64,000 nucleotides of DNA from Piromyces finnis finn (GCA_002104945.1 MCFH01000028.1:186001-250000); one strand, 5' to 3'; positions 27,301-61,626 are shown, numbered from the stretch's first letter. Program-made: numbers and translations. Notes: generated by a model from the sequence alone, not told the origin.

Positions 27301-27551
27301 CCAATTATTTCTTTATTAATAGTACAAATGAATATGTTTCTGTTGGCAGTGGTGGTGGAAAATATGGTCTTTGGTTTGACCAACAAATGTTAAATGGTCG
27401 TAGTCAAGTGTGTGAAACATTCCGTAATGAAGTTTTATCCACTTCTGAAGATTTTCAAATTGTTGATATAGAACTTTGGGCTTTCACCACCCAAGTTGAA
27501 AGAGAAGTACTAAGAACAAGACCATCCACTTTTCGTATATCCAAAGAATAA
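24302..27551 (+). CDS. DH (RhoGEF-like)-PH-TLDc fusion protein; 3 predicted exons, about 738 aa
   Basis: Exon 2 (25176-26783) carries DH-like motifs (KYVNELYTIEYEF...IDSIFKGISDIF...FYLPIYQIQSYYDIFLRLQKGT), a PH-like segment (RLVLFDDVIVIAKK) and the TLDc start (LIYSMQLHGSSLSTFY...IFGAFTSEPF...FYGNGETFLW). A phase-1 intron (26784-26997) leads to the TLDc end (VSVGSGGGKYGLWFD...GRSQVCETFRNEVLS...DIELWAF). Exon 1 (24302-24356, MSGLKLKS..., phase-1 GTAA donor) is the least certain part. Confidence 0.85.
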
Positions 27552-27591
27552 AAAAAATAGATATTTTATAGATTTTATAGATTTTTAGATT

Positions 27592-27641
<50 letters not shown>

Positions 27642-28004
27642 CCTTTTATCGTAATTAAATAATATTTTTTGAAAATGAAGAAGAATAAAATAATTTTATT
27701 ATACTCTTTGATAATTTAAATAGGATTAAAAATTAAATATTATTGTATTTTTCTTTCCTCCTATTCTATATATTTATATATAGTGTTTTGCAATAAGTTT
27801 TTTTTATAATAATAAATATAAAAATAAAAAAAAAAAATAAAAAAATAAAAAAAAAGAAATAAAAAACTAAAAAATAAAAATAATTATATATATATAATAT
27901 ATGTATTTATATTCAAACGATAAATAATAAATAAATGATTATTATTGTTATTGTTATTGCTACTATTATAATTAATTAATTTATATGGAAATAAAGACTT
28001 GATC

Positions 28005-28037
<33 letters not shown>

Positions 28038-28448
28038 TACTTTTATTTTATTTATTTATTTTTAATTTAGTATAGTATATATATTTATATTTTTTTTTTT
28101 ATATTATTATTATTTATTTATATATATTTATTTTTTATTTATTTATTGTTTATATTTTTTTGGTGTGTATGTGTGTATTTTTTTTTTTTTAGCTTTATTT
28201 TTTTTTTTTTTTTTTTTTTTAATTTTCTTTTTATATTAATTTATTTGCTTAGTATTGTTATTGTTATATTGTTTTATGAGGTTAATTTTAATTATTTTTT
28301 TTTTTTTCATTGCTTACTAACTACTAATTTAAAAAAAAATAAAAAAAAAAGTTATATATAATGATGATATATAATATTAAGGAATAAAAAAAATAATTAT
28401 TTTAAACTATTATTATGGAAGTGAAGATGATGTGATGAGAGAGTAAAA

Positions 28449-28483
<35 letters not shown>

Positions 28484-28699
28484 AATAGTTATTATTAATT
28501 TTATAATGACGAATATGGTGTTATTTGTAGTTATAATGAGTTTATATTGATTCTTTTCTTCTTCTTCTTTTTTTTTTTTTTTTTCTTTCTTTCTTTTTTT
28601 TTTTATTTATATATAGAATATATAGAATAATAAAAAAAAAAAAAAAAAAGGAATTAAATATTCGTTTTCATATAACTATATATTTTCTTCTTTCATTTG

Positions 28700-28784: not shown

Positions 28785-31700
28785 TTAAAATTCGCTTTTT
28801 CCGCGATGTCTAGAGTAACTAAATGTGGAGGCATTACTTGGTGGTGGATTAGCAAAGTATCCACTGGTTGATCTTGGACTGAAACTTGAATTGGATGGAG
28901 ATGATCTTTGACCAAATCCAAAGCTATTAGAAGATGTTGATTTAGCTAAACCAAATTTATTTGAACCTAAGGTTAATGGAGAAATTGATTTCTTATTTGG
29001 ATCAGCTTGTATATTTTGACCGAATAAATTGCCATTTGAATTACCATTATCATTCTTAAATAAAGAATCGGTATTTGAAGCAGCAGCAGAAGAACTGAAC
29101 CATTGATTACCATTATTAGCATTGTTATTCTTGAATAAGGAATCAGCAAAAGTATTATTGCTATTGGTATTTAAGTTATTACGGTTACTTGCTGTACTAG
29201 ATTTTCTTTCTACAGTATCAAATCCCCAACCATTACTACTGGTATTGGTTGTATTGCTACTCCAATTAGTGAAACCCCAATCATTATCTGATTTTTTATC
29301 TGACTTGGAAGCTGATTGTGGTGACTTAATATTATTCCAACCATCAAATGAAACGTTAGAATTTTGAACTGGAGTAGTGGTTGGTGGTGGTATAAAACTT
29401 TGGTTATTATTAATTGGACTCTTAGATTCAACTTGTTTTGGTGCAAATAAGTTGTTGGTGGTATTAGTGGTTTCTGGTTTTTGATCAAAAGTCATGAAAT
29501 TATCAGTATCCCAACCATTAATGTTCCAGCCGTCATTTGCATTATTTTCTCCTCCAAAATCAAATGGAATGCTATCATTAGAAACTGGTTCTGGATTCTT
29601 TGGTGGCTCTTCAACCTTTGGCTTTACAGGTGATTCTGGCTTTGGAGCTGGTGATACTTCTTGATTTGGTTTATTTTCTGGTATATCTTTAATTTCTGAA
29701 AAGTCCCAGTTATCTGTAAATCCCCATCCATCATTATCATTGCTTGGTGGATCTGGGAAAGTTAAATCTGGAAGTTGATTATCTTGAGCTGGGGCTTGAA
29801 CTGGAATAACTTCTGGAACTTGAGCTTCTGGAACAGGGGCTACAACTTCATTTGGAATAATTTCTGAACCTGGTATAGTTAAACCTGGAATTGGAGCAGA
29901 AATTTCAGGGGTAGGCATCGTGTAACTTGATGCTTCAGGAACTGAACTTTCTGAAACAATATTATTTTGGTTTAATGGTTCTGAGGATGGAATAGGGAAT
30001 TCTGGAGCTGGTGGATTAGAAATGCTTGTAAATTGTTCTGGAGATGGAATGGTGAATTCTGGAGCTGGTGGGTTAGAAACACTTGTCAATGGTTCTGGTT
30101 GAGTTGGTTCTGGAATATCAAATGGAATATTATCAGTTTTAAGAGCATCCATATCCCATGCTCCGAAACCATCATTATTGGTGGATTCTGGCATATCAAA
30201 TGGAATTGAATCATTCTTAATAGCATCCATATCCCAAGCACCCATAGAAACATCATTATTTACTTCTGGAATAATTGGAATTTCAGAATTATTAATAGTT
30301 GTTGTTGTATTTTGAACTTGAATTACTGGTTCATTGGAGAAAGGCATTTGAAGTTGTTGAGTTGGTGATGGTAATGGTGATGGAGCAGAAGTCATAAAGA
30401 ACATATCCTTTACTTCTGGATTGAAATATTGTTCAACTCCTTGTTGTGGTGGTAATGCTTCAGTTTGAACTTCTGGTACTACTTCTTGTTTACCAACTTC
30501 AATTTCAGTATTATTTATAGGAATTGATTCAAGAACTGGTTCTTGCTTTTCAACTACTTCATTGTTGAATACAGGAATTGATTCAAGAACTGGTTCTTGC
30601 TTTTCAACTACTTCATTGTTGAATACAGGAATTGATTCAAGAACTGGTTCTTGCTTTTCAACTACTTCATTGTTGAATACAGGAATTGATTCAAGAATTG
30701 GTTCTTGCTTTTCAACAACTTCATTATTGAATACAGGAACTGGTTCAAAAGCTGGTTCTTGCTTTTCAACTTCAATATTATTGTTCTTTATTTCTGGAAC
30801 GATTTCTTGAACTGGTTCTTGAATATATTCTTGTTCTTCATTATCATCTTCTTTTTCTTCGACCTGTTCTCCATCTTCACCTTCATAGTCAAATTCACTT
30901 TCTTCAGAATCAGTTTCATTATCAGAAAGAGCATCAAGGCTTCTTAACTTACTACGGTATTTCTTAACCTTTTCTTCCATATCGTATAAGCACATGAGTA
31001 AATCTTCATGCTCTTTTTCAATATTTTCATTTTCTAATTTAAGTTCATTTATTTCTTCTTTGTATGTTTCTATTGCTTCAGCAGTTGCACCTTCATTTTG
31101 TTTTGCAATATTTTCGGTCACACGAATTTGTGGTTCTATTTCACTTCTTAATTTGGTTTCTAATTCTAATCTTATTTCTGGTTCTAACAATTGCTTTAAT
31201 TCTTCTGTAACCTTGTCACGAATTTCTTCAGTTAATGAGAATTCTAAATTCATCTTAACTTCTGGTTCTAATGCTTGTCTCAATTCTTGAGTAACCTTAT
31301 CTCTGCATTCATCAGCATACATTCTTTCTAAATTCATCTTAATTTCTGGTTCTAAAGATTGTCTTAATTCTTGAGAAATTCTTTCCTTACATTCAGCAGC
31401 ATAAGTTTGTTCTAAATTCATTTTTATTTCTGGTTCTAATGTTTGTTTTAATTCTTCGGCAATCTTTTCTCTGCATTCATCAGCATACATTCTTTCCAAA
31501 TTCATTTTAACCTCAGATTCTAAAGATTGTTTCAATTCTTGATAAATCTTATCACGGATTTCATCGGAGAATTTTTGTTCTAATGAAGATTTAACTTCTG
31601 GTTCTAAAGTTTGTTGTAAATCTTGAATAACCTTTTCACGACATTCTTCAGTAAACATAAATTCCAAGTTCATTTTAACTTCTGGTTCTAAAGCTTGTTG

Positions 31701-34700
31701 TAATTCTTGTGTAACCTTTTCACGACATTCTTCAGTAAGCATAAATTCTAAATTCATTTTAACTTCTGGTTCTAAAGCTTGCTTTAATTCTTGAGAAACC
31801 TTTTCACGACATTCCTCTGTAAATCTTTGTTCTAAGGAAGCTTTAACTTCACCTGAAAGTCTATCTTCTAATTCCTTAATTACGGATTCTTTCATTTCTT
31901 CTTCAATTTTGCTACGAACCTCTGATTGAAGAGCATCTCTTAATTCAGTAGAAATACTCTCAACCATTTCTGCTTCACGTTCATTTCTAATTTCTGATTT
32001 AACTTGGTGTTCAACTTTTTCTTTTATTTCTTCTTCAAATTCACTTCTTAAATTTTCCTTTATTATAGGTTCAAATTCTTCCTTTAATTGACGTTCTAAA
32101 TTCATCATAATTTCTGGCTTAAGAGCTTCTCTTAATTCTTGTGTAATCTTTTCTCTACATTCTTCTGAATACCTTTGTTCTAATGAATTCTTAACATCAT
32201 CTGTAAGTTTTGGTTCCAATTCTGAAATTATTTCATCCTTAATTTTTTCTTCATAGATTGGTCTCAATTCTCTTTCTAATGAAATCTTTACTTGTTCCTC
32301 GAGACTTTCTCTTAATTCTGCAGTTAATTTTGCTAAAATTTCTGGCTTATATTCTTCACGTATTTCATCTTCAATACTACCCTTTAATTCTTCTTCTAAG
32401 GAACCACGAAGTTCACTATTGAGATCAGCTAAAACCTTTGGCTCACAAATAACTCTTAATTCTTGTTCAACAGCTGCCTTAATTTCATCATTAAGGAAAG
32501 TACGTTTTTCCTTTTCAAGCTTAACCTTTAATGCTTTAGCTTGTTTTTCCCATGCATCTTGTTTTTCCTTGTAGTCCTTTTCCCAACGTTCTTTTTCTTC
32601 TTGCATATCACTTTCCAATTCGACCTTTAAGTCTTCCCATTCTAATGCTTCACGCTTAACTCTAGTTTCTTCCCATAATTCATCAATATCCCATTGAAGA
32701 GAACCTAAGAGTGGACAAGCAGTACGGCATTCTGGTGAAATTAAAGAATCATCGATTTCACAAACTTCCAAGGATGATTGGTGTCTGTAAAGAATATACC
32801 ATTTATTACTTATAGTTTTATTTAACGAGTTAGTTGGTAGACCCTTAAGATTGATAAAACTATGAATTGGCTTATCTAACTTCCAACCTATAGCATAGTC
32901 AAATTGAACACCATCAAAATTAAATGGACAATCGCAGTAAAATTTGAAAGCTTGAGTAGATTTAGTGAGATTAGATCTTAATTTAATTGGCGATTGAACT
33001 TCATCTTCTTTTACTAATGGGGAAGATAAATGGAAACTAAAAAGCATTGATTCATTATTCTTATACGCGATTAAACATTTTAACTTTTCATCCCATTTCC
33101 AAAGTGTCTTACGACCTAAATTTAATTCATGTAAAACATTTAAATTAAAGGTATCTAAAATTTGAATGCATCTGTTTTTATTGCTGCCAACGATTAAAAT
33201 AGAATCAACACCAAATTTGTTATTATAGCATGCAAATTCCAATGAATTAATTGGTTTTGCGGATCCAACTGGTTTTCTACCCTTTTTATAATGAACTGGT
33301 GAGAAATAAAAGAATGGTAATTGGAAATCACCAATTTCATTCATATTCCATAATCTAACTAAACCATCTTCACCGCCAGTAGCTAAAATAGAACCATCAG
33401 TGTTAAATGCAAGACATCTAACATCACATCCATGTTCTAATTTAACGGCTTTAATACCGAGTTTAAGCCTATTATCACGATCTTGTTCCTTCTTTTGAAT
33501 AATCTTTCTTCTACGTTTTTCTCTCTTCTTTTCCTTTCTTCTACGTCTACGTTCCTTCTTTTTCTTTTTCATTTCTTCATCCGAAGATGAGGATGAAGAA
33601 GAGGATGAATCACTAGATTCTGATTCTTCTTCAGAATCTTCTTCATCTGCATTAATCTTTCTCTTCCAAAGATTATCTTCAATGTTAAAGTAAAGAGCAC
33701 ATTTCATGTTGGTACCAACAACAAATGAATTTGGATTATTTGGTTGGAAAGAAGCACAATAAATTTGATATTCATTACTTTTGATGGCCATAATAATAGT
33801 ACAGAAATCGGAAGAAAGTTTTCCATTTTCAAATATATCTTTACTTTCATCAAATTCATGAACAATAATTACACCTTCTTCATCAATACTTAAAAGTCTA
33901 GTATACTTATTTTCTATTGTAGTAATATCAATGTGAATGATATTACTTGAATGACCACCAAGAACAAACTTAAATTTCTTTTGTTCTTGAATAACATGGA
34001 TATTCTTACCATCAATATAACAAACGTACTTATTATTTTTATCAATAACTATTGAAGATGAAACGTTATTAGTATAAGCTTCTAAGGATTCTGAGGACTT
34101 ACTTATAAGATTAAATGGTAAATCCTTTGAAGATAAAGGACTAAATAAGTAATCATCATCTTTTAAGAAATCATATTCTACAGTAGTAGCTGGTAATCTT
34201 ACACCATCTGGAATTCTATCTTTTTGTCTATAAATTGGTCTACGTTGATCAGGTTCAGTTAAAATTGATGAATCCTTTACCTTGATTTCTTTGGTTTGTA
34301 ATCCAACATCTTCTTTTTCTACAGTAGTAACTTCATCAATAGTTTGAACTCCTTGATCTGAGGTTTCAACAGGTGTAGCATTTGGAGTATTTTCAGTTTC
34401 TTTATCAACAACTTCTTCAGTTATTTCTGTCATTGTTGAATTTTCAACCATCTCTGGTTTTGCTGAACCATCAGTATAACCATAGCCATAGCCATAGCCA
34501 TATCCACAGTTATAACCATATTGAGCATAATATGAAGCATATTGTTCGTTACTATATTGTGGGTTTCCGTTAGCATCAACTGTAGTTGCATATTGTGGGT
34601 TTCCATTAGCATCAACTGTGGTTGCATATTGTGGGTTTCCGTTAGCATCAACTGTAGTTGCATATTGTGGATTTCCATTAGCATCAACTGTAGTTGCATA

Positions 34701-36228
34701 TTGTGGGTTTCCATTAGCATCAACTGTAGTTGCATATTGTGGATTTCCGTTAGCATCAACTGTAGTCATATATTGTTGATCAGCATAGGTTTGTTGTTCA
34801 ACAGGACTAACATAAGACATTTGTTGATCTGTTGGAATAGCATAAAGTTGTTGTTCATCTGGGTTAATGTAAGATGATTGTTGTTCAGTAGTAACAGTAT
34901 TTGTTTGTTGTTCTTCAACAGTATTAATTGTAGATGGTTGTTGTTCAACAGGACTAATATAAGATGATGGTTGTTCGATATTTGCTTGTTGTTCTTCAAT
35001 AGTATTAATTGTAGATGGTTGTTCAACAGGACTAATATAAGATGATGGTTGTTCGATATTTGCTTGTTGTTCTTCAATAGTATTAATTGTAGATGGTTGT
35101 TGTTCAACAGGACTAATATAAAATGATGTTTGATCAATATTTGTTTGTTGTTGTTCAACTGAATTAATTAAAGAAATTGGTTGTTCCACTACAGGACTAA
35201 TATATAATTGTTGTTGTTGTTGTTGTTGTTCAATTGATATAGTATTAGTTTGGGCTGGTTGTTCAGCATTACTAGTTTGAGCTGGTTGTGATTGTTGTTG
35301 TTGAGTTTCTTCAACATCAGGGTTAATGGTATCATGAGTTTCTATCAATTGAGTATGGCATTTCAAGTTATTAAATATTGAAAATTATAAAAATATATAG
35401 ATAGATAGATAGATAGATTATTCATGTTATTATATTATTCAATAAAGGATTCATTAAAAAAAAATAATAATAATTTTATTTGCTTTATCTTGTATTTAAA
35501 TTTCATATCCAAATATTTATTTTTTTTTTTTTTAAAATAGTATTTTATTAATGTTTCTTTTTATAATTTGTAATTATCACAATAGACATATTTATATTAC
35601 CTAAATTAGCTGGAATAATTTCTGGAGAAGGAATTAATGTTTCAGTTGTAATTGATGTTTTCTTATCTTCCTTCTTCTTTGAATTATGTATATTTTCTGA
35701 TTCTTTGTCGAAACGACCTATCTGTGAGTTTGAAAATTTCTTAGCCTTATTACGAGATTTTCTTCCTCTTGTATATGTTGATGGTGCTTTTGGTGTATCA
35801 TATAAAGAATTATTAGAAGGAGGTGGATTAGTACCACTTAAAGATAATGAGTACAATGTTGGACTTATAATTTCATTATCCTTTGGAGGAGCAGATAATG
35901 TATCATTATTAGTATTTGTTGAGAGCTTATCATTTTCACTATCTTTTGGTGGACCATTTGTTTTATCATTTATATTTGTATTAGTTGGAAATGGTTTATT
36001 ATCAGAAGGTGGTAAACTATATGAAATAGGACTAGTCATGTCACTATCTTTTGGTGGGCCACTTAAAAGTGAAGGTTCATGGGTAATTGGTGATTCTTGA
36101 TGTAATTCTTTAGTATTTGAATCGTTTGTATGTGAGGTTTGGTTTGTTAGTTCATGTGTAGATGGTGATTCATCTTCATCAGATTCACTCCATGGCTCAG
36201 CCATGAAATTTAAATCTATATCATCCAT
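28785..36228 (-). CDS. EDC4: Giant repetitive protein (about 2394 aa) with an EDC4/Ge-1/Varicose-type WD40 propeller, 28-aa helical repeats and a Trp-rich disordered tail
   Basis: The WD40 region (about 34060-32740) aligns by eye with Varicose/EDC4 as I recall them: IVIDKNNKYVCY..NIHVI..FVLGGHSSNIIHI..LLSIDEEGVIIV; EHGCDVRCLAFNTDGSILATGGEDGLVRLW; KPINSLEF; ILIVGSNKNRCIQI; FDYAIGWKLDKPIHSFI. Exon 1 (36228-35601) joins exon 2 (35341-28785) through a frame-preserving phase-1 GT-AG intron. The symbol refers to the propeller only; orthology is not established. Confidence 0.75.
30515..30770 (-). repeat. 54-bp coding tandem repeat (QEPVLESIPVFNNEVVEK, 4 full copies plus a partial)
   Basis: ggttcttgcttttcaac recurs every 54 bp. 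Confidence 0.95.
31188..31859 (-). repeat. 84-bp coding tandem repeat (28-aa unit LEPEVKMNLExxxxEECREKVTQELxQx, 8 copies)
   Basis: Eight consecutive 28-aa units fill 672 bp; further degenerate copies lie on both sides. Confidence 0.92.
34555..34770 (-). repeat. 36-bp coding tandem repeat (ATTVDANGNPQY x6)
   Basis: agcatcaac recurs six times at 36-bp spacing, with almost only synonymous differences. Confidence 0.97.
34860..35200 (-). repeat. 78-81-bp coding tandem repeat (YISPVEQQPSTINTIEEQQANIEQPSS, about 3-4 copies)
   Basis: acaggactaatata recurs on the plus strand; the protein repeat is visible in the ORF track. Confidence 0.9.
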
Positions 36229-54819: not shown

Positions 54820-57800
54820 ATGGTTACTATTCTTCAATCAAATTCACCAGAAATAATTCCTTGTACTCCAAAAAAATCAAATATTTATCAAAAACATCAT
54901 ACAAATTTAAAATCAGATAGAACTATAACAACAAATATTGATACAGCATCTTCTTCAACCTCAAATAGATGTTTAACTTCATTATCGACAGGTTCATCTA
55001 AAATATATTACAAGAAAAATATAAAAAATTTATTAGCAGTCCCATCCATACCAACATCACTTCCACCCATTGATAATATTAGTAATTATCAAAATTATTA
55101 TCATAATCCTCACTTCAATACCATAACTAAACGTTATACAAGTTTAAATTCAGGTATAAAAGAACCAACTATTTCCAGGGATAACTTTTTGGTTTATCCA
55201 TTTAATACTATGGTTAGTGAATCATTAAATTCACCAAATATCAACGATAATCACGACATACCAATAGATATTCAATCCTTCAAGGATACTATAGGTATAA
55301 CACCACCTTCAACAACTCCTTCAACACCTACAACACCTTCATCTATACATTTAAAAAATATTGATACGCTTGATGAATCATTTTTATCTGTTCCTTCTTC
55401 AATAGAATCAAAAAATCTTTTAAAAGAAACACCATCTTCAAATACCCTATTACCTTTTTCGACGTCAAGTCAATATACCAAGAATAAAAATAATTGCAAA
55501 AATACTACCTCTATTATGACTACTATTCATCACCCAAAAATAAATCGTTTACTACCACCATCAAATAATACTACTATGAATTCAAAAAAAATAATAAAAA
55601 AATCATTATCTAAAGGATTTTACGAAAACAATTTTGATACTCGTTTTACATCACCGAAAAATACTATACCAAATTCCGTCATAAAATCAAAGCATACTTT
55701 ATACAATGGTAGTTTTAATGTACTTTCAAATTCTAATCCTTGCTTAATATCGTCAAAACATAAAGCATTATGCCTTCAACTCTTAGTGGACTTAAGACGT
55801 CATTCGGATTCCGGTCCATTCCTAAACGCGTCGGAGAACAAAAAAGAATGCTGCCGTGAAAGAGAACGTCGAAAAAAGAGTAAAAATAGAAAAAATGGTG
55901 TCAAGCAAAATACCATGTTGATATCCAAAATGTCAAATACCTATGACAATGTTACATTAGATTCTTGTAAACATTCTTCCGATCTTTATTCCATACAACA
56001 GCAACTGGAAGAAGACGGCTATAAAAATATTTACAGTGTCTTTTTGGATTTACAACAAATGCTTCTTTATTTCTATAATTCATGCCATGATCATTTTATT
56101 CATCGTATGGGAAAAAATATAGAAAAATTTTTAATAGAGAAGCTTGAAATGATGCCTGAAGATTTTATTAAGGAATTAAGGGAACAATGCATTCACCATT
56201 ATCAATACTATAGAAGGTTAGCCTTATCTTCATCCACTTCATATCCAGTATTACCAAGTTTTCTTAAAGTTATTACTTTACCAACCTTATTAGATGATTC
56301 GTTTGAATCTGAAGAAGATTGGATGATCTCTGATCATGACGGTTTAAACGACGCCATTCATGATAAAGCTTCATTCCAACGTGAAGAGCAGTTGAAGGCG
56401 TGTAAAAAAAAGGAACGTGAAAAGTTGTGTCTTATTCTTGGTGAAAATAATTCTGATAAATTGATAAAAAAATCAAAGGGAAAATCAATTGTTTGTAAAT
56501 TCAATGATGAAGAAAAATTGTCGTCTTCCTCCTCCTCCTCCTCCCTTGATAGAAAACGTAAGCACACTCAAAAGGAAGATGAAACTAGACTCGTTAGTTG
56601 GAATATTATTTTAAAGAAGATACCCCATTCCTCTAGTCAACCCAATGACTGTGCAAACCCTATAAATAAAAAGATAAAAACATTAAAGTATGATTCAGTC
56701 AAGGGAAAAACGTTTGCTCATCACCCCAAAAATAAAAATTGGATTATTCAACTCAAAAGAAATGGCCAATCCCAATCCTTTGTTTTTTCAAGAAATTTAT
56801 CCTATCGTCACCATCATTCTTCAAATCTTTCCTCAAAACCATTTAATTTTATTTTAACTCTACCCACCGAAATTATAAAAAATTCTCCATGGGCAAAATT
56901 CTTTTATCATTATACCGCCGTTTCACCAAAATCCTTAAAAGAGGAAAAAAAGGAAAGAAAACTACTTTATCAAACCAAATCAAAACCATTGATTGAGGTA
57001 AAAGAGAGCAATGTAGTAGTAGAATCATCACCTCATCCTAAATCCTCCAAGAATGAAAAAATGGAGGTTTCCGCCGTGTTACCAAAAAAGCAACTTGAAT
57101 TTAATTCTTCTGAGATGGGTATAACACAAGCCTCAGGTAACAATCGATACACTAATTGAGTTTTTAACTAGTTTTTTTTTTTTTTTTTTTTTGCGACTCA
57201 TAAAAGATTAATTTTTTTTTTTTGCCAATTTTTTTTAGAGGGTCATGAAAGAAAAAAAGAATTGAATGACGATATGTTTGTCGATCTTTGCTCATCCACA
57301 TCCTCCGAATTTGATAAAAAAGATTTAATGGAAAAAGAAGACATGGAATGCTCAATGAAATGTGACTTTTTACCACCAACCCCACCTTCATCTTCTCCAC
57401 CGTCCTCTCCAATGAACATTACGGAAGAGGAGGTCAAAGAAATGACAGAAAGAGAGGATGACGATGTTATGGCTTTAGATGTTAAAGAAAAAGTCGATAC
57501 CACCAAAAAAGAAAAAGATGGTGATAAGGAAAAAAATAAAAATGCGGAAAAGAAAAGTGACAAGACAGAAAAGAAAGAACTTGTCAAGGAAGAACAAAAG
57601 AAGCCATCGACCGAAAAGACAGAATCAAGTTTTAATCCATTAGAGTGGTTAGAAAGTAAAAAAGATTCAAAATCTTTAAATTATGAAGCCTTAAATTCTC
57701 TTAAAAAAGATCAACAAGAGTCACTCTCCAACTTTTTAATTCACCAACAAATTAATAATATTATTGAGACTCAATTGTTGATTGATCATTTAAATAATGT

Positions 57801-60800
57801 TAATGATTCAACCTCCACCCATTCCTCCTTACCCTCTTTGTATCCATTAAATCATTTTGACCATTTTTTAAATAATCTACCAAATTTTTCTGATCCTAAC
57901 AACAGCACAAACCTTCTTTCCTCATTAATGCTAACGAATGAAAATGATTTATCTTCTACGGTTGCGGCATTAACTTCGGCCAACCAAGCATTTGATGCTA
58001 CCAACGATTTCATTGATTGGGAAAAAGCCTGTAGCGATAATCTTTCTAATGGTCAAAATATCGTTCATTCGTCAATGCTTTCTTCCTTGGATACAACCTT
58101 TCCTTCCTTATTACCAAGTTGTTCAAATGACTCCTTATTGTCCAGTACAAGTGCTATTACTGAAAATATAATGAATTCCTATGTTAATAATTATTTCGAT
58201 GATACTATGCTTAATCCTCTATACGATATCCCATCAACATCAACAAGCTCTACAGCTGCTGCTGATCTTTCTCTTTTTGATACCAATAATTTAACTTTAA
58301 ATCATTTAATTCCTGAAGATATTAACTCTTTTGTAAATAATACCACAATATCATCTTCGCCATCAGAATTAGCATCATATCCAACTCATACAATGGATTT
58401 AAATCCTTTAACTACCACCCCCCCTGTTTTTTTGAATCAAAATGCATTAGCTTTTAATTCCATACCATACTCTTCTAAATTATTAGCTAATCCATCCTCT
58501 TTTCCATTAATGAATGCCAAAGATCCTCTGATGATGGGAGGTTTAAATGACCCAGTTACAATGGCTCTTCATACCTTACCTTCAAATCTACACTATTCTT
58601 CTCCAGCCTATTCCTTACGTAATACAAAATTAGGTGGTATTTCTTCAACACCACCATCTACTTCCTCAAATAGCGTCTATAAACATCATCATCATATTAA
58701 TAGTAGTAATTTATATATAACAGCTTCTAATATCGCAACCTCTCTTACCGCTGCTTCCAAAAAGATGTCAAAGAAATCGACAGCAGCAGCAACAACTAAA
58801 GCAGCAACAACAACTGAATCAAAACAATCTTTACCAAAGCAATCAAAAAAGCATACTTTAAAGACCCCTGATGTTGTTGAGGATGGTTCAGTTGCCACCA
58901 CCACCACCACCACTCCAACAACAACAACAGCAACAACAACAGCAACAACAACAACGACAGCAACAACTGTGGCTTCAACAGTTTTAATTCCAGAGGGTAC
59001 CACTAAAATTCCAGCAACTACTTCAGATAAAACTTTTGCAATGCCAATAGACGATACTGCAAAAATGACAACAATTTCTAATAAAGTGGCCAGCACAAGT
59101 AGTACAGTAGCCATACCAACAGTGACAATGACAACTACTGTTGCTAAGCCAACAACGACCATAAAAGATACTGCAGCAATGATGACCAGTGTTGTTGTCA
59201 AACCAACAATAGCACCAGCAACCATAGAGGATACAACAATGGTGGTCAGTACTGTTGACAAGCCAACATCTGTCATGGAAGATACAACAACCATAAAGGA
59301 TAAGACCACCATCACAACGACTCTTATGGATGATGTTACAGCAACTCAAAGTTCATTAGATCCTGCTTCTATTTTAAATTTACCCTCAAATGAGGGTAAA
59401 AAGGAGGAAAAAGAAGAAAATTCTACCAATGATAAATTATTATCTTCCGAAAAATCCGATAGGGGTGAACCCATTCTTAATTCTTTAGATAGAGTTACCC
59501 CAACCATTCCATCAAAAATCATTGCAGATACGATGCCTTCACTTTCAGCACCAACTTCTGATGTTATGTTAAGTGAGGTGAGTAAAGAAATTCAAGAGAA
59601 TCTTTCCTTTTTATCCAATACCCCCTCCATCATTGAAAATGAAAACGATACTGCCCATAACACGAATGATCTTTCTATCATCAGCACGGATGATTTTCTT
59701 ACTCCTCCAAATTATTCCTATTATGATTTATTATTAAATCTTAATAATAATTGTAATGAGACCCTTATTTCAGAAATGGCTAATCATGAATCTACCGAAA
59801 ACATGACCTTGGATGAAAATACTAATGGTCCTGTAAAGAAGGAAAAAGTTTTTGATAAAGGTAAAACAGGAGATATTACTGAAGATAAATCGTTCAATGA
59901 ATCAAACAGGGTTACCCTTCCTTCCAGAAAAGAAGGTTCAAAGGATGCCGCCGTAAAAAAGGAGGTTAAAGTTGAAGAAATAAAACCAAAGCCAAAAAGA
60001 ATAAGAATTTCGCTTGACCTTTCTCACTCAAATAGTAAGAAGGAAGAAGAAGAGGAAGAGGAAGAAAGTGAAGAAGAAAGTTTTATGGAGCAAGATATTA
60101 TAGAAGAAGAAGAAGAAGAAGAGGAAGAAGAAGTTAATGATATAATGGAAGAAGATTTAGAATCCGAAGAAGAAGAAGAAGAAGAAACAGATGATTATGA
60201 AAGTGATGAATTTGAAATGGAGGATGATGATGAAATTGAAGATTCTGACGAGGATAAAATGGAAGATGATGAAGATGATGAAGAAACCAATTTATCCTTG
60301 ATGGATATAAAACGTATAAAGCAACAACAGCAACAGCAACAACAGCAACAACAACAGCAACAACAACAGCAACAGCAACAACAACAGCAACAACAACAAC
60401 AACAACAGCAACAACAAAAGCAACATTATCATCAAAAAGAGGTGCTCCAAACAACTGAAATAATTAAAACCAATATCAAGATGAATTCACCACCAATTCC
60501 AAGAATTATTGTTCACACCAAAAAGCCAGTAAAAGTTGAATGCGATAGTCATGAATACGTTAATGTACAACAATTAAATTTTGAAGATCATCAAGAAAAT
60601 ATTTTTGATATTGAATATTTAACTCCGGAAATCTTATCAAAATTAAGAAAGTCAATTTCATCCAAGCCAAAAGAAGTAAAGAAAATAACGAGTCTTGCTG
60701 CCTATGGAACCAGAATTAATTCAACGGTTGATAAAAAAGAAAAAATTATTAATCTTTCAAAGTTGGTCATTAAAGAAAATAAGGAAAGAAAAATGGAAAA

Positions 60801-61626
60801 AAAGCCGATGATTAGTGCTCGTTCTAAAAAAATGAGAGGTAGAAGTGTTTTAAAGGTTCCAGTGTTAACTGAATCCAACAGCTCTAAAGCTAACAGTATT
60901 AATACACCTACTGCTGTAGCAGCAGTAACAACCAATACTCCTGTAAGAGGTAAGGGTAGACCAAAAGGTCATTGTGGAAGACCAAGAAAGAGATGGCCAG
61001 TGGAATCTCCACAAATTCCATTGGATCATATTAAAAGTGAACTTTATAATGCCAATAAAGAAAATAAAGAAAATAAGTTTATGGTAGAAGAAAGTGGTAA
61101 TACCCTTTATATTAAACCAGAATTACAAGAAAAGTCATCTGAAACGATCATCACTCAAGTATCTGTCACCACATCTTCTTCTGTAGAACCCATTACTGTC
61201 ATTACTTCTACTGTCCCTTCCTCGGTTATTACATCCACTAGAAATAGTCATTTTTATTCATCCTCTCCTAAACAATGTACCTATTGTGGCTCCACTAGTA
61301 CTCCATTATGGCGTCATGGTCCACCAGAATCACCTCGTCTTTGTAATAGTTGTGGTGTGAAATGGAAACGTGGTAAAATTCTTCAATCGCAACCTTCTGG
61401 TTTCCCATGGAATTCAATTTCGGTTGATAAGAAAACTGAAGAATTTCGTTCATTAATGCGTTGTATCACTTCTGAAAAAGTTTTAAAGGTTTTAGGAATT
61501 TTAAAAACATGTATGACCATTGCAATGAAACGTCAACTAGATCGTGGTGAAGGTGTCAAAATTGATATTCGTAGTATTGATTCAAGAGCTTGGAGTCAAT
61601 TATATCGTTATATTAAATGTCAATAA
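54820..61626 (+). CDS. BET-like chromatin protein: degenerate bromodomain, acidic/polyQ tracts, AT-hook-like motifs, GATA zinc finger, C-terminal ET-like domain; 2 exons, about 2234 aa
   Basis: ORFs 54820 and 57262 join via a phase-1 GT-AG intron (57137-57238). Bromodomain-like 55771-56163 (CLQLLVDLRRHSDSGPF...KHSSDLYSIQQQLEEDGY...DHFIHRMGKNIEKFLIEKLEMMPED). RGKGRPKG and CGRPRKR at about 60944-60990. GATA finger CTYC-x18-CNSC at 61276-61353. The terminal EKVLKVLGILK...VKIDIRSIDSRAWSQLYRYI resembles the BET extra-terminal domain. Confidence 0.8.
60322..60417 (+). repeat. Coding CAA/CAG repeat (about 32 Gln)
   Basis: Mixed CAA/CAG codons within the large plus-strand ORF. Confidence 0.97.

Follow-up and report, generated by a model that had tools for sequence, protein, structure and literature searches.

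A spliced gut-fungal gene for a lineage-restricted scaffold protein with conserved tryptophan motifs, distinct from EDC4

The window analyzed here is a stretch of 64,000 nucleotides (nt) from Piromyces finnis (MCFH01000028.1:186001-250000), and positions are counted from its first letter. On its minus strand lies one expressed, spliced gene that encodes a protein of 2,394 amino acids (aa), with a divergent WD40-type propeller and a disordered tail bearing conserved Trp residues (Table 1). The exon 2 side is a single uninterrupted minus-strand frame that runs from 35366 to the stop at 28785 in the translation of the open reading frame (ORF). An N-terminal peptide (…DIDLNFMAEPWSES…) opens two orthologues, L003 and L004, both of which are uninterrupted ORFs that share their N- and C-termini with the window product. 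In the window this peptide belongs to a separate upstream ORF (36228-35548), and joining of the exons across the intron (35600-35342) preserves the frame. In three probable RNA runs (X2, X3, and X4), which come from two studies, contigs carry the joint of 35341 to 35601, skip exactly 259 bases (CT..AC on the plus strand), and match the window without any difference over the compared 5.9 kb. Because these three runs splice out the 259-nt intron, whereas the contigs of a DNA run (X1) retain it, we conclude that the gene extends from 28785 to 36228 and is transcribed and spliced. A previous sequence-only reading of this DNA had placed the gene at 28785-34060. Its stop end was correct, but position 34060 is internal to the gene and the real start is at 36228. 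Outside that description lay approximately 600 residues of helical repeats between the propeller and the tail, as well as approximately 570 residues N-terminal of the propeller.

We found five copies of this family. In addition to the window copy, they are an ENA metagenome sequence (P0001/L002) whose 2,060-aa gene call is missing the first exon, a GenBank P. finnis sequence (P0014/L001; MCFH01000168.1) with a 1,063-aa model named "WD40 repeat-like protein," and two JGI metagenome ORFs of 2,481 aa (L003) and 2,203 aa (L004). The propellers of the other four copies are 75-87% identical to that of the window copy, and the order of domains is the same. The GenBank P. finnis copy is only ~75% identical to the window copy (~25% differing), and no synteny between its contig and the window was seen beyond the gene itself. 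At this divergence it may be a paralogue, or the window may derive from a different strain or species. After the propeller, at positions 3500-6000 of L001, the frame changes many times, and the p115-like motif (see below) and tail islands are still recognizable in other frames. These breaks may reflect either assembly error (indels) or a decaying paralogue. Due to them, the public 1,063-aa model stops early and spans less than half of the gene. Word-index protein searches with the propeller, with its C-terminal half, and with the p115-like piece returned only P0001, P0014, and generic WD40 proteins. As judged by sequence searches, anaerobic gut fungi (Neocallimastigomycota) and metagenomes of rumen or gut are the only sources in which the family has been detected to date.

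The tail comprises the last 490 residues, which are rich in Asn, Ser, Thr, Asp, and Pro (N 14%, S 13%, P 12%) and contain exactly 11 Trp. Six of these are in Gly-Trp or Trp-Gly (GW/WG) contexts (DGWGF, NDGWN, INGWD, FDGWN, NDWGF, and NGWGF) and two more are in GAWDMD, just as the sequence-only reading had described. In a four-way alignment of the tails, 9 of the 11 Trp are invariant, versus 106 of 538 residues overall (19.7%; hypergeometric P = 1.3e-5), and thus the Trp motifs, whose lack of conservation would have counted against that reading, are conserved. Trp is the most conserved residue type of the tail, followed by R, K, G, and F. The Trp residues are found within islands of 15-45 residues that also contain Phe and charged residues, and the linkers between the islands drift. 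Among the conserved units is KKSI[SA]PL[TA]LG…KFG. Most of the conserved Trp pairs are spaced only 4-5 residues apart. In each orthologue, 7-10 tail Trp have G, S, T, N, or D as neighbors, and the tail has 8-11 GW/WG. FG-like dipeptides occur at the extreme C-terminus (4-7 FG per protein). Motifs for eIF4E, DDX6, and LC3-interacting regions are absent or not conserved, and FDF occurs in the window copy only. Overall, the alignment indicates that the conserved Trp-rich tail is real and more than a product of chance.

The propeller is assigned as WD40-type based on a single repeat, within an all-beta region, that exceeds the gathering score of PF00400 (35.1-40.6 bits versus a cut-off of 27). AlphaFold2 models built from three- and five-sequence alignments place ~27 strands in this region with low confidence (predicted local distance difference test [pLDDT] of 36 and 34), so we do not claim a closed seven-blade ring. 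The only segment with higher values (pLDDT ~70-77) is an insert that is predicted to form a helix. It consists of an acidic-Ser run followed by ~35 residues that are nearly pure K/R/E, with a weak SR-25 match, and could be a nuclear localization signal or an RNA-binding arm. In a search of PDB sequences with the protein, every match was confined to the canonical WD40 repeat. The order of propeller, rod, and FG-like tail also raised the possibility of an FG-nucleoporin (Nup214/Nup159-like), but this was rejected, as FG dipeptides number just 4-7 in each protein and the WD40 repeat is of the canonical kind.

The sequence-only reading held that the propeller follows Ge-1/EDC4 motifs blade by blade, which we could not reproduce. 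Ge1_WD40 (PF16529), the profile that this reading had itself set beforehand as its refuting test, gave 12.8 bits for the whole frame, 17.2 bits for the propeller alone, and 18.0 bits for orthologue P0001, all below the gathering cut-off of 29.5. The alignment is restricted to the canonical WD40 repeat (profile positions ~167-216 of 329), where THOC3, Prp19, WDHD1, and other propeller models outscore Ge1_WD40. The EDC4_C domain (PF21289) was not found; its best score was 9.0 bits (E = 1.5; cut-off 27), inside the repeat rod. On this point the earlier observation that the conserved helical C-terminal domain of EDC4 is missing was correct. We also searched 1.84e9 representative proteins with a HMMER profile of three sequences from the C-terminal half of the propeller, a region picked to keep the generic repeat from flooding the results. 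At E < 1e-10 this retrieved only the family's own cluster, with no EDC4 and no outside relative. The N-terminal half was searched against PDB sequences, and there neither propeller-half profile found anything, EDC4 included. Feature neighbors in the ESM Atlas were only generic WD40 clusters (0.89-0.91), and the cilia-associated WD40/coiled-coil proteins CFAP44 and CFAP57 appeared there as weak leads only.

Like EDC4/Ge-1/Varicose, the window protein is large, and a long non-globular region follows its one WD40-type propeller. Unlike EDC4/Ge-1, it scores below the Ge1_WD40 gathering threshold, lacks EDC4_C, and has no relatives outside gut fungi in the search with the C-terminal half of its propeller. 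Its N-terminal low-complexity regions, repeat rod, and Trp-bearing tail are not known from EDC4. We conclude from the profile searches that the protein is not an EDC4/Ge-1 orthologue. As the propeller is not EDC4-type, the proposed coupling to mRNA decapping, which depended on that identity, is unsupported.

Table 1. Positions of the gene, its exons, and the predicted regions and motifs of its product, from the N-terminus to the C-terminus
Feature	Position	Strand	Residues	Description
Whole gene	28785..36228	minus	2,394 aa	Exons 1 and 2; stop TAA at 28785-28787
Exon 1	36228-35601	minus		Joined in frame to exon 2
Intron	35342..35600	minus		259 nt, GT..AG, phase 1; read from the sequence and RNA-run contigs
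Exon 2	35341-28785	minus		ORF and in-frame join
N-terminal region			1-210	Disordered; conserved islands including LNFMAEPW (6-13), [G/A]PPKD repeats, and basic block
PAM2w-like motif LNFMAEPW	36190..36213	minus	6-13	Acidic surroundings; putative ligand for the MLLE domain of poly(A)-binding protein (PABP)
[G/A]PPKD repeats	36046-36060, 35941-35955, 35878-35892	minus		Alignment of four N-termini
Basic block	35707-35775	minus		YTRGRKSRxKxKKFSNxQIGRFD; alignment of four N-termini
Q/N/T-rich repeat region	34257..35341	minus	~211-570	Tandem repeats, prion-like low complexity; translation and composition
Gly-Tyr block	34464-34532	minus		YYAQYGYNxGYGYGYGYGYTDGS; end of Q/N/T-rich region
Divergent WD40-type beta-propeller region	32712..34253	minus	~573-1086	Conserved pre-propeller peptide PDQRRPIYRQKDRIPDGVRLP
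Propeller insert	33462..33653	minus	64 residues	Acidic/Ser run, then K/R-rich helix
Canonical WD40 repeat	33339..33446	minus		Single; …DGSILATGGEDGLVRLWN…; PF00400
E/K/L-rich helical region	30927..32711	minus	~1087-1680	~600 residues; Pro every 14-28 residues
Tandem 28-aa repeats	31158-32183	minus		…TEECREKVTQELKQALEPEVKMNLEFML…; …ECREKVTQELKQALEPEVKMNLE…; in helical region
Uso1/p115-like C-terminal module	30888..31115	minus	1619-1694	…EHEDLLMCLYDMEEKVKKYRSKL…; continues into acidic patch
Acidic patch	30825-30929	minus		After p115-like module
Window-specific tandem repeats	30471..30776	minus	~1732-1833	…VFNNEVVEKQEPVLESIP…; ~5 copies of an 18-residue unit
Tail	28788..30257	minus	~1905-2394	Disordered, N/S/P-rich; 11 Trp in conserved islands
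Island B	30108-30248	minus		FG[AG]W[DE]MD…IPFD, twice
Island C	29691-29735	minus		DGWGFTDNWDF; DGWG[FI][TS]D[ND]W across orthologues
Island D	29478-29576	minus		IPFD…NDGWNIxGWDT…F[MV][ST]F; IPFD…N[DN]GWN[IV]xGWDT…F[MV][ST]F across orthologues
Island E	29214-29354	minus		FDGWN…KKSDNxWGFTNW…GWGFDT; FD[GS]WN…KKS[DN]xxWGF[TS]xW…WGF[DG] across orthologues
Island F	29097-29153	minus		FADSLFKN…W[FL]
Island G	28932-29003	minus		KKSISPLTLGSNKFG
Island H	28788-28922	minus		GFGQRSPPSNSS … SRxRG

Other parts of the protein vary among the copies. Units of the ECREK-type 28-aa repeat in the helical region number seven in the window copy, 11 in L003, three in L004, and one in P0001. The region matches no Pfam family in a Pfam scan. 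With hydrophobic residues every four positions and one Pro per unit, the 28-aa repeat is unusual for a coiled coil. The 18-residue repeats downstream of the acidic patch have no counterpart in the orthologue alignment, where the other copies carry unrelated acidic, Pro-rich, or KSP-type repeats. The Q-rich repeat units that flank the Gly-Tyr block are completely different in each orthologue, and the block itself is kept in all of them. It resembles Tyr-Gly low-complexity "sticker" regions. Beyond the gene on its downstream side, the G+C content of intergenic DNA drops to 10-12% (27500-28500).

At the opposite end of the protein we identified a motif that may connect it to mRNA. The N-terminal LNFMAEPW fits the PAM2w core LNxxAxx[F/W], and is possibly a PABP-docking motif, a match at the motif level. 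The core is kept as LNFMAEPW in the window copy, L003, and L004, and as LNLMADPW in an exon upstream of the P0001 (L002) gene call. By composition, a match to this core is expected ~0.02 times per protein. In ligands of the PABP MLLE domain, LNxxAxx[F/W] forms the canonical part, and its Trp variant, PAM2w, is found near the N-terminus of LARP4 and LARP4B (PMC7356810). As in these two proteins, an LNxxAxxW core is part of a flexible region close to the N-terminus (PMC7356810). Unlike them, the window protein has no La or RRM module, and what it shares with them is limited to the 8-residue core. The motif points, independently of the tail, to messenger ribonucleoprotein (mRNP) biology. Other conserved N-terminal islands, which together span 35707..36060, are a basic block and [G/A]PPKD(N/S)(D/E)…SP..YSLS, present in two to six copies per orthologue. 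No Pfam family matches the [G/A]PPKD islands or the basic block, and neither is readily recognizable as a known class of ligand.

The most fitting description of the protein is a modular scaffold, its parts being of known kinds and their combination new. We are confident that the locus is a real gene, and that its product is a lineage-restricted scaffold with conserved Trp motifs that is not EDC4. Regarding function, we tentatively suggest that it acts as a PABP-docked, multivalent adaptor that self-associates and belongs to cytoplasmic mRNPs. Docking to the MLLE domain of PABP would be through the N-terminal PAM2w-like peptide, and the low-complexity and helical regions would multimerize. The Trp islands of the tail would fit into hydrophobic Trp pockets on one partner or several, with CCR4-NOT or PAN3, Argonaute, or another mRNP or membrane component as candidates (cf. 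the GWW of Upa2). For the scaffold together with this mechanism, which is our best explanation of the locus as a whole, we estimate a probability of roughly 0.4.

In its layout, such an adaptor resembles GW182 or Upa2, of which Upa2 is the nearest analogue in the literature. Upa2 of Ustilago maydis is a 2,121-aa, largely disordered endosomal mRNP scaffold with PAM2 at its immediate N-terminus, a coiled-coil dimerization region, and a C-terminal GWW that is needed for localization (10.1101/455378). The two proteins share their size (~2,100-2,400 aa), a largely disordered character, an N-terminal PAM2-type motif, a helical or coiled-coil region for multimerization (predicted in the case of the window protein), and a Trp motif in the C-terminal part, which in Upa2 is functionally critical. 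They differ in that the window protein has one PAM2-like motif rather than four and has no GWW (there is no WW in any orthologue tail), and in that it contains a propeller, which is not described for Upa2. Given the lack of GWW here and of a described propeller in Upa2, the likeness is one of layout, not membership. Upa2 and its partner Rrm4 are reported to be basidiomycete components, and Rrm4 is most likely absent from Neocallimastigomycota (10.1101/467787).

Several observations weigh against the mRNP adaptor mechanism. The functional argument is built wholly on short motifs, and the propeller fold was not modeled with confidence. The PAM2 core is matched once more in the window, by LNQNALAF at 58432-58455 on the plus strand, in a neighboring BET-like ORF (57262..61626). 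This may be either a chance match that shows the background of an Asn-rich proteome or another PABP ligand. The background is therefore not negligible and the motif alone is weak evidence, so that the case rests on how it is conserved and where it lies. In Upa2, function does not require the PAM2 motifs (10.1101/455378). The K/R-rich insert of the propeller and the basic N-terminal block resemble nuclear localization signals. Finally, the p115-like module and the acidic Trp motifs point equally to binding of vesicle coats.

This last observation leads to an alternative that we consider unlikely, a golgin- or tether-like membrane-traffic protein whose rod would terminate with a p115/Uso1-like module and an acidic patch and whose acidic Trp/Phe tail motifs would capture vesicle coats, for example via the delta-COP mu-homology domain or adaptor ear domains. 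In a scan of the N-terminus, rod, and tail, Uso1_p115_C (PF04871) is the only Pfam signal besides WD40, and it is borderline. When 131-aa pieces of the rod end were searched, it was the top match in four of four orthologues, with 34.3 bits in the window copy, 33.0 bits in L004, 28.3 bits in L003, and 24.3 bits in P0001. Two of these exceed the gathering score of 28.4 and a third is 0.1 bit short of it. However, the match extends over only ~70 residues. It is not reported for the window frame in a whole-protein scan, where P0001 scores 20.2 bits, and the word-index search with the p115-like piece gave no word-level relatives. Trp motifs amid negative charge are known delta-COP ligands of Dsl1 and ArfGAP1/Gcs1 (ELM 2020, PMC7145657; PMC6737914). 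There is, however, no Gcs1-type WxxF, and also no NPF, DP[FW], FxDxF, or conserved clathrin box, which leaves unsupported an earlier suggestion that the Trp/Phe words are classic endocytic adaptor motifs. The loose pattern W-x(1-6)-[WF], which we take to be of the delta-COP ligand type, is found 4-5 times in every tail but is very degenerate, and FG[AG]W[DE]MD resembles the acidic aromatic-Gly ligands of ear domains. Pfam scans of the protein revealed neither the armadillo head of Uso1 (Uso1_p115_head) nor any other trafficking domain. The window protein resembles p115/Uso1 in the borderline scores of its rod end and acidic patch, and differs from it in the missing head, in a rod that is broken by Pro every 14-28 residues, and in the long Trp-bearing tail that follows the acidic patch.

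Alternatively, the protein could be a structural or condensate scaffold without a dedicated Trp-pocket partner, possibly nuclear, nucleolar, or cytoskeletal, in which Trp, Phe, and Tyr would be stickers of a generic kind and the propeller's ligand would have no relation to mRNA decay. The large low-complexity regions (Q/N, GY, and N/S/P) and the fast turnover of repeat number are consistent with this, as are the FG-like dipeptides at the extreme C-terminus. The acidic-Ser and K/R-rich insert and the basic N-terminal block could in this case be nuclear or nucleolar signals, which they resemble. We nevertheless consider such a scaffold improbable. Exact Trp positions and entire islands are kept across four lineages while the linkers diverge, which is unexpected for stickers, and the number of FG dipeptides is far below that of FG nucleoporins.

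The sequence-only reading had viewed the tail as a GW-type adaptor to Argonaute, and part of this view stands: the Trp motifs are conserved, and gut fungi have Dicer and Argonaute, with siRNA (small interfering RNA) knock-down shown to work in Pecoramyces (PMC5796279). The WG/GW score is less encouraging. We re-implemented the WG/GW domain scoring of Karlowski et al. 2010 (Table 1 matrix of that study, extension drop 8.6, threshold 6.99 half-bits at P = 0.01). Domains in the window tail score 13.4, 17.2, and 36.6 half-bits, and those of the orthologues are similar. All pass the threshold, but these values are weak to low-medium, as the proven platforms NRPE1, SPT5-like, and GTB1 exceed 150 half-bits. 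A score of 17.2 half-bits was also obtained for an unrelated ORF of the window. The matrix disfavors Phe, a residue of the conserved Trp islands. In addition, the Trp-binding pockets of fungal Argonautes are variable, according to a 2025 survey (PMC12477606). Argonaute binding by the tail is thus possible but not favored.

A broader proposal is that gut fungi independently evolved a GW182-like adaptor that does not involve EDC4. The PAM2w motif would dock PABP, the tail Trp would recruit Argonaute and/or CCR4-NOT/PAN3, and the propeller and the variable rod would add binding and multimerization. Like GW182/TNRC6, the window protein is a scaffold that is mostly disordered and multivalent, contains a Q-rich region, has small or acidic residues next to its Trp, and bears a PAM2-class motif for putative PABP docking (here PAM2w-like), and the two could work alike via PABP docking and Trp-mediated recruitment. 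Unlike GW182/TNRC6, it has no UBA or RRM domain in Pfam scans (including that of P0001) and no sequence homology to that family. Its tail, and those of the orthologues, have only 11-12 Trp, in longer islands that contain Phe, and a weak-to-medium WG/GW score. Its Trp region is located at the C-terminus and its PAM2-like motif at the N-terminus, and a propeller and helical rod are present. On balance, we regard a convergent GW182-like adaptor as quite unlikely.

Least probable, and in our estimate very unlikely, is the model from which the analysis started, an EDC4-type propeller plus Argonaute hook that links small-RNA-loaded Argonaute to DCP1/DCP2/XRN1: the single WD40 propeller, the conserved GW/WG motifs with scores above the published threshold, and the presence of Ago and Dicer in gut fungi agree with it, but it is opposed by the Ge1_WD40 and EDC4_C scores, the lack of EDC4 kin in the large protein library, PDB sequences, and Atlas neighbors, the low WG/GW scores and the comparable score of an unrelated window ORF, the close spacing of Trp within Phe-containing islands, and the variable Trp pockets of fungal Argonautes.

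For annotation, the locus should not be labeled EDC4, and the public 1,063-aa P. finnis model of this family represents less than half of a gene. According to the sequence-only reading, GW182 is restricted to animals, and the link from fungal Argonautes to mRNA decay or repression would therefore be mostly an open question. A scaffold specific to this lineage, with a putative PABP-docking motif as well as conserved Trp motifs, offers a concrete candidate for such a link. If the GW182-like adaptor proved to be true, it would constitute a convergent fungal connection of small-RNA silencing to mRNA decay that is achieved without EDC4. Even if its partner proves to be a vesicle coat, the protein illustrates how a new giant adaptor can arise by combining a propeller with a helical repeat that can expand and with short linear motifs.

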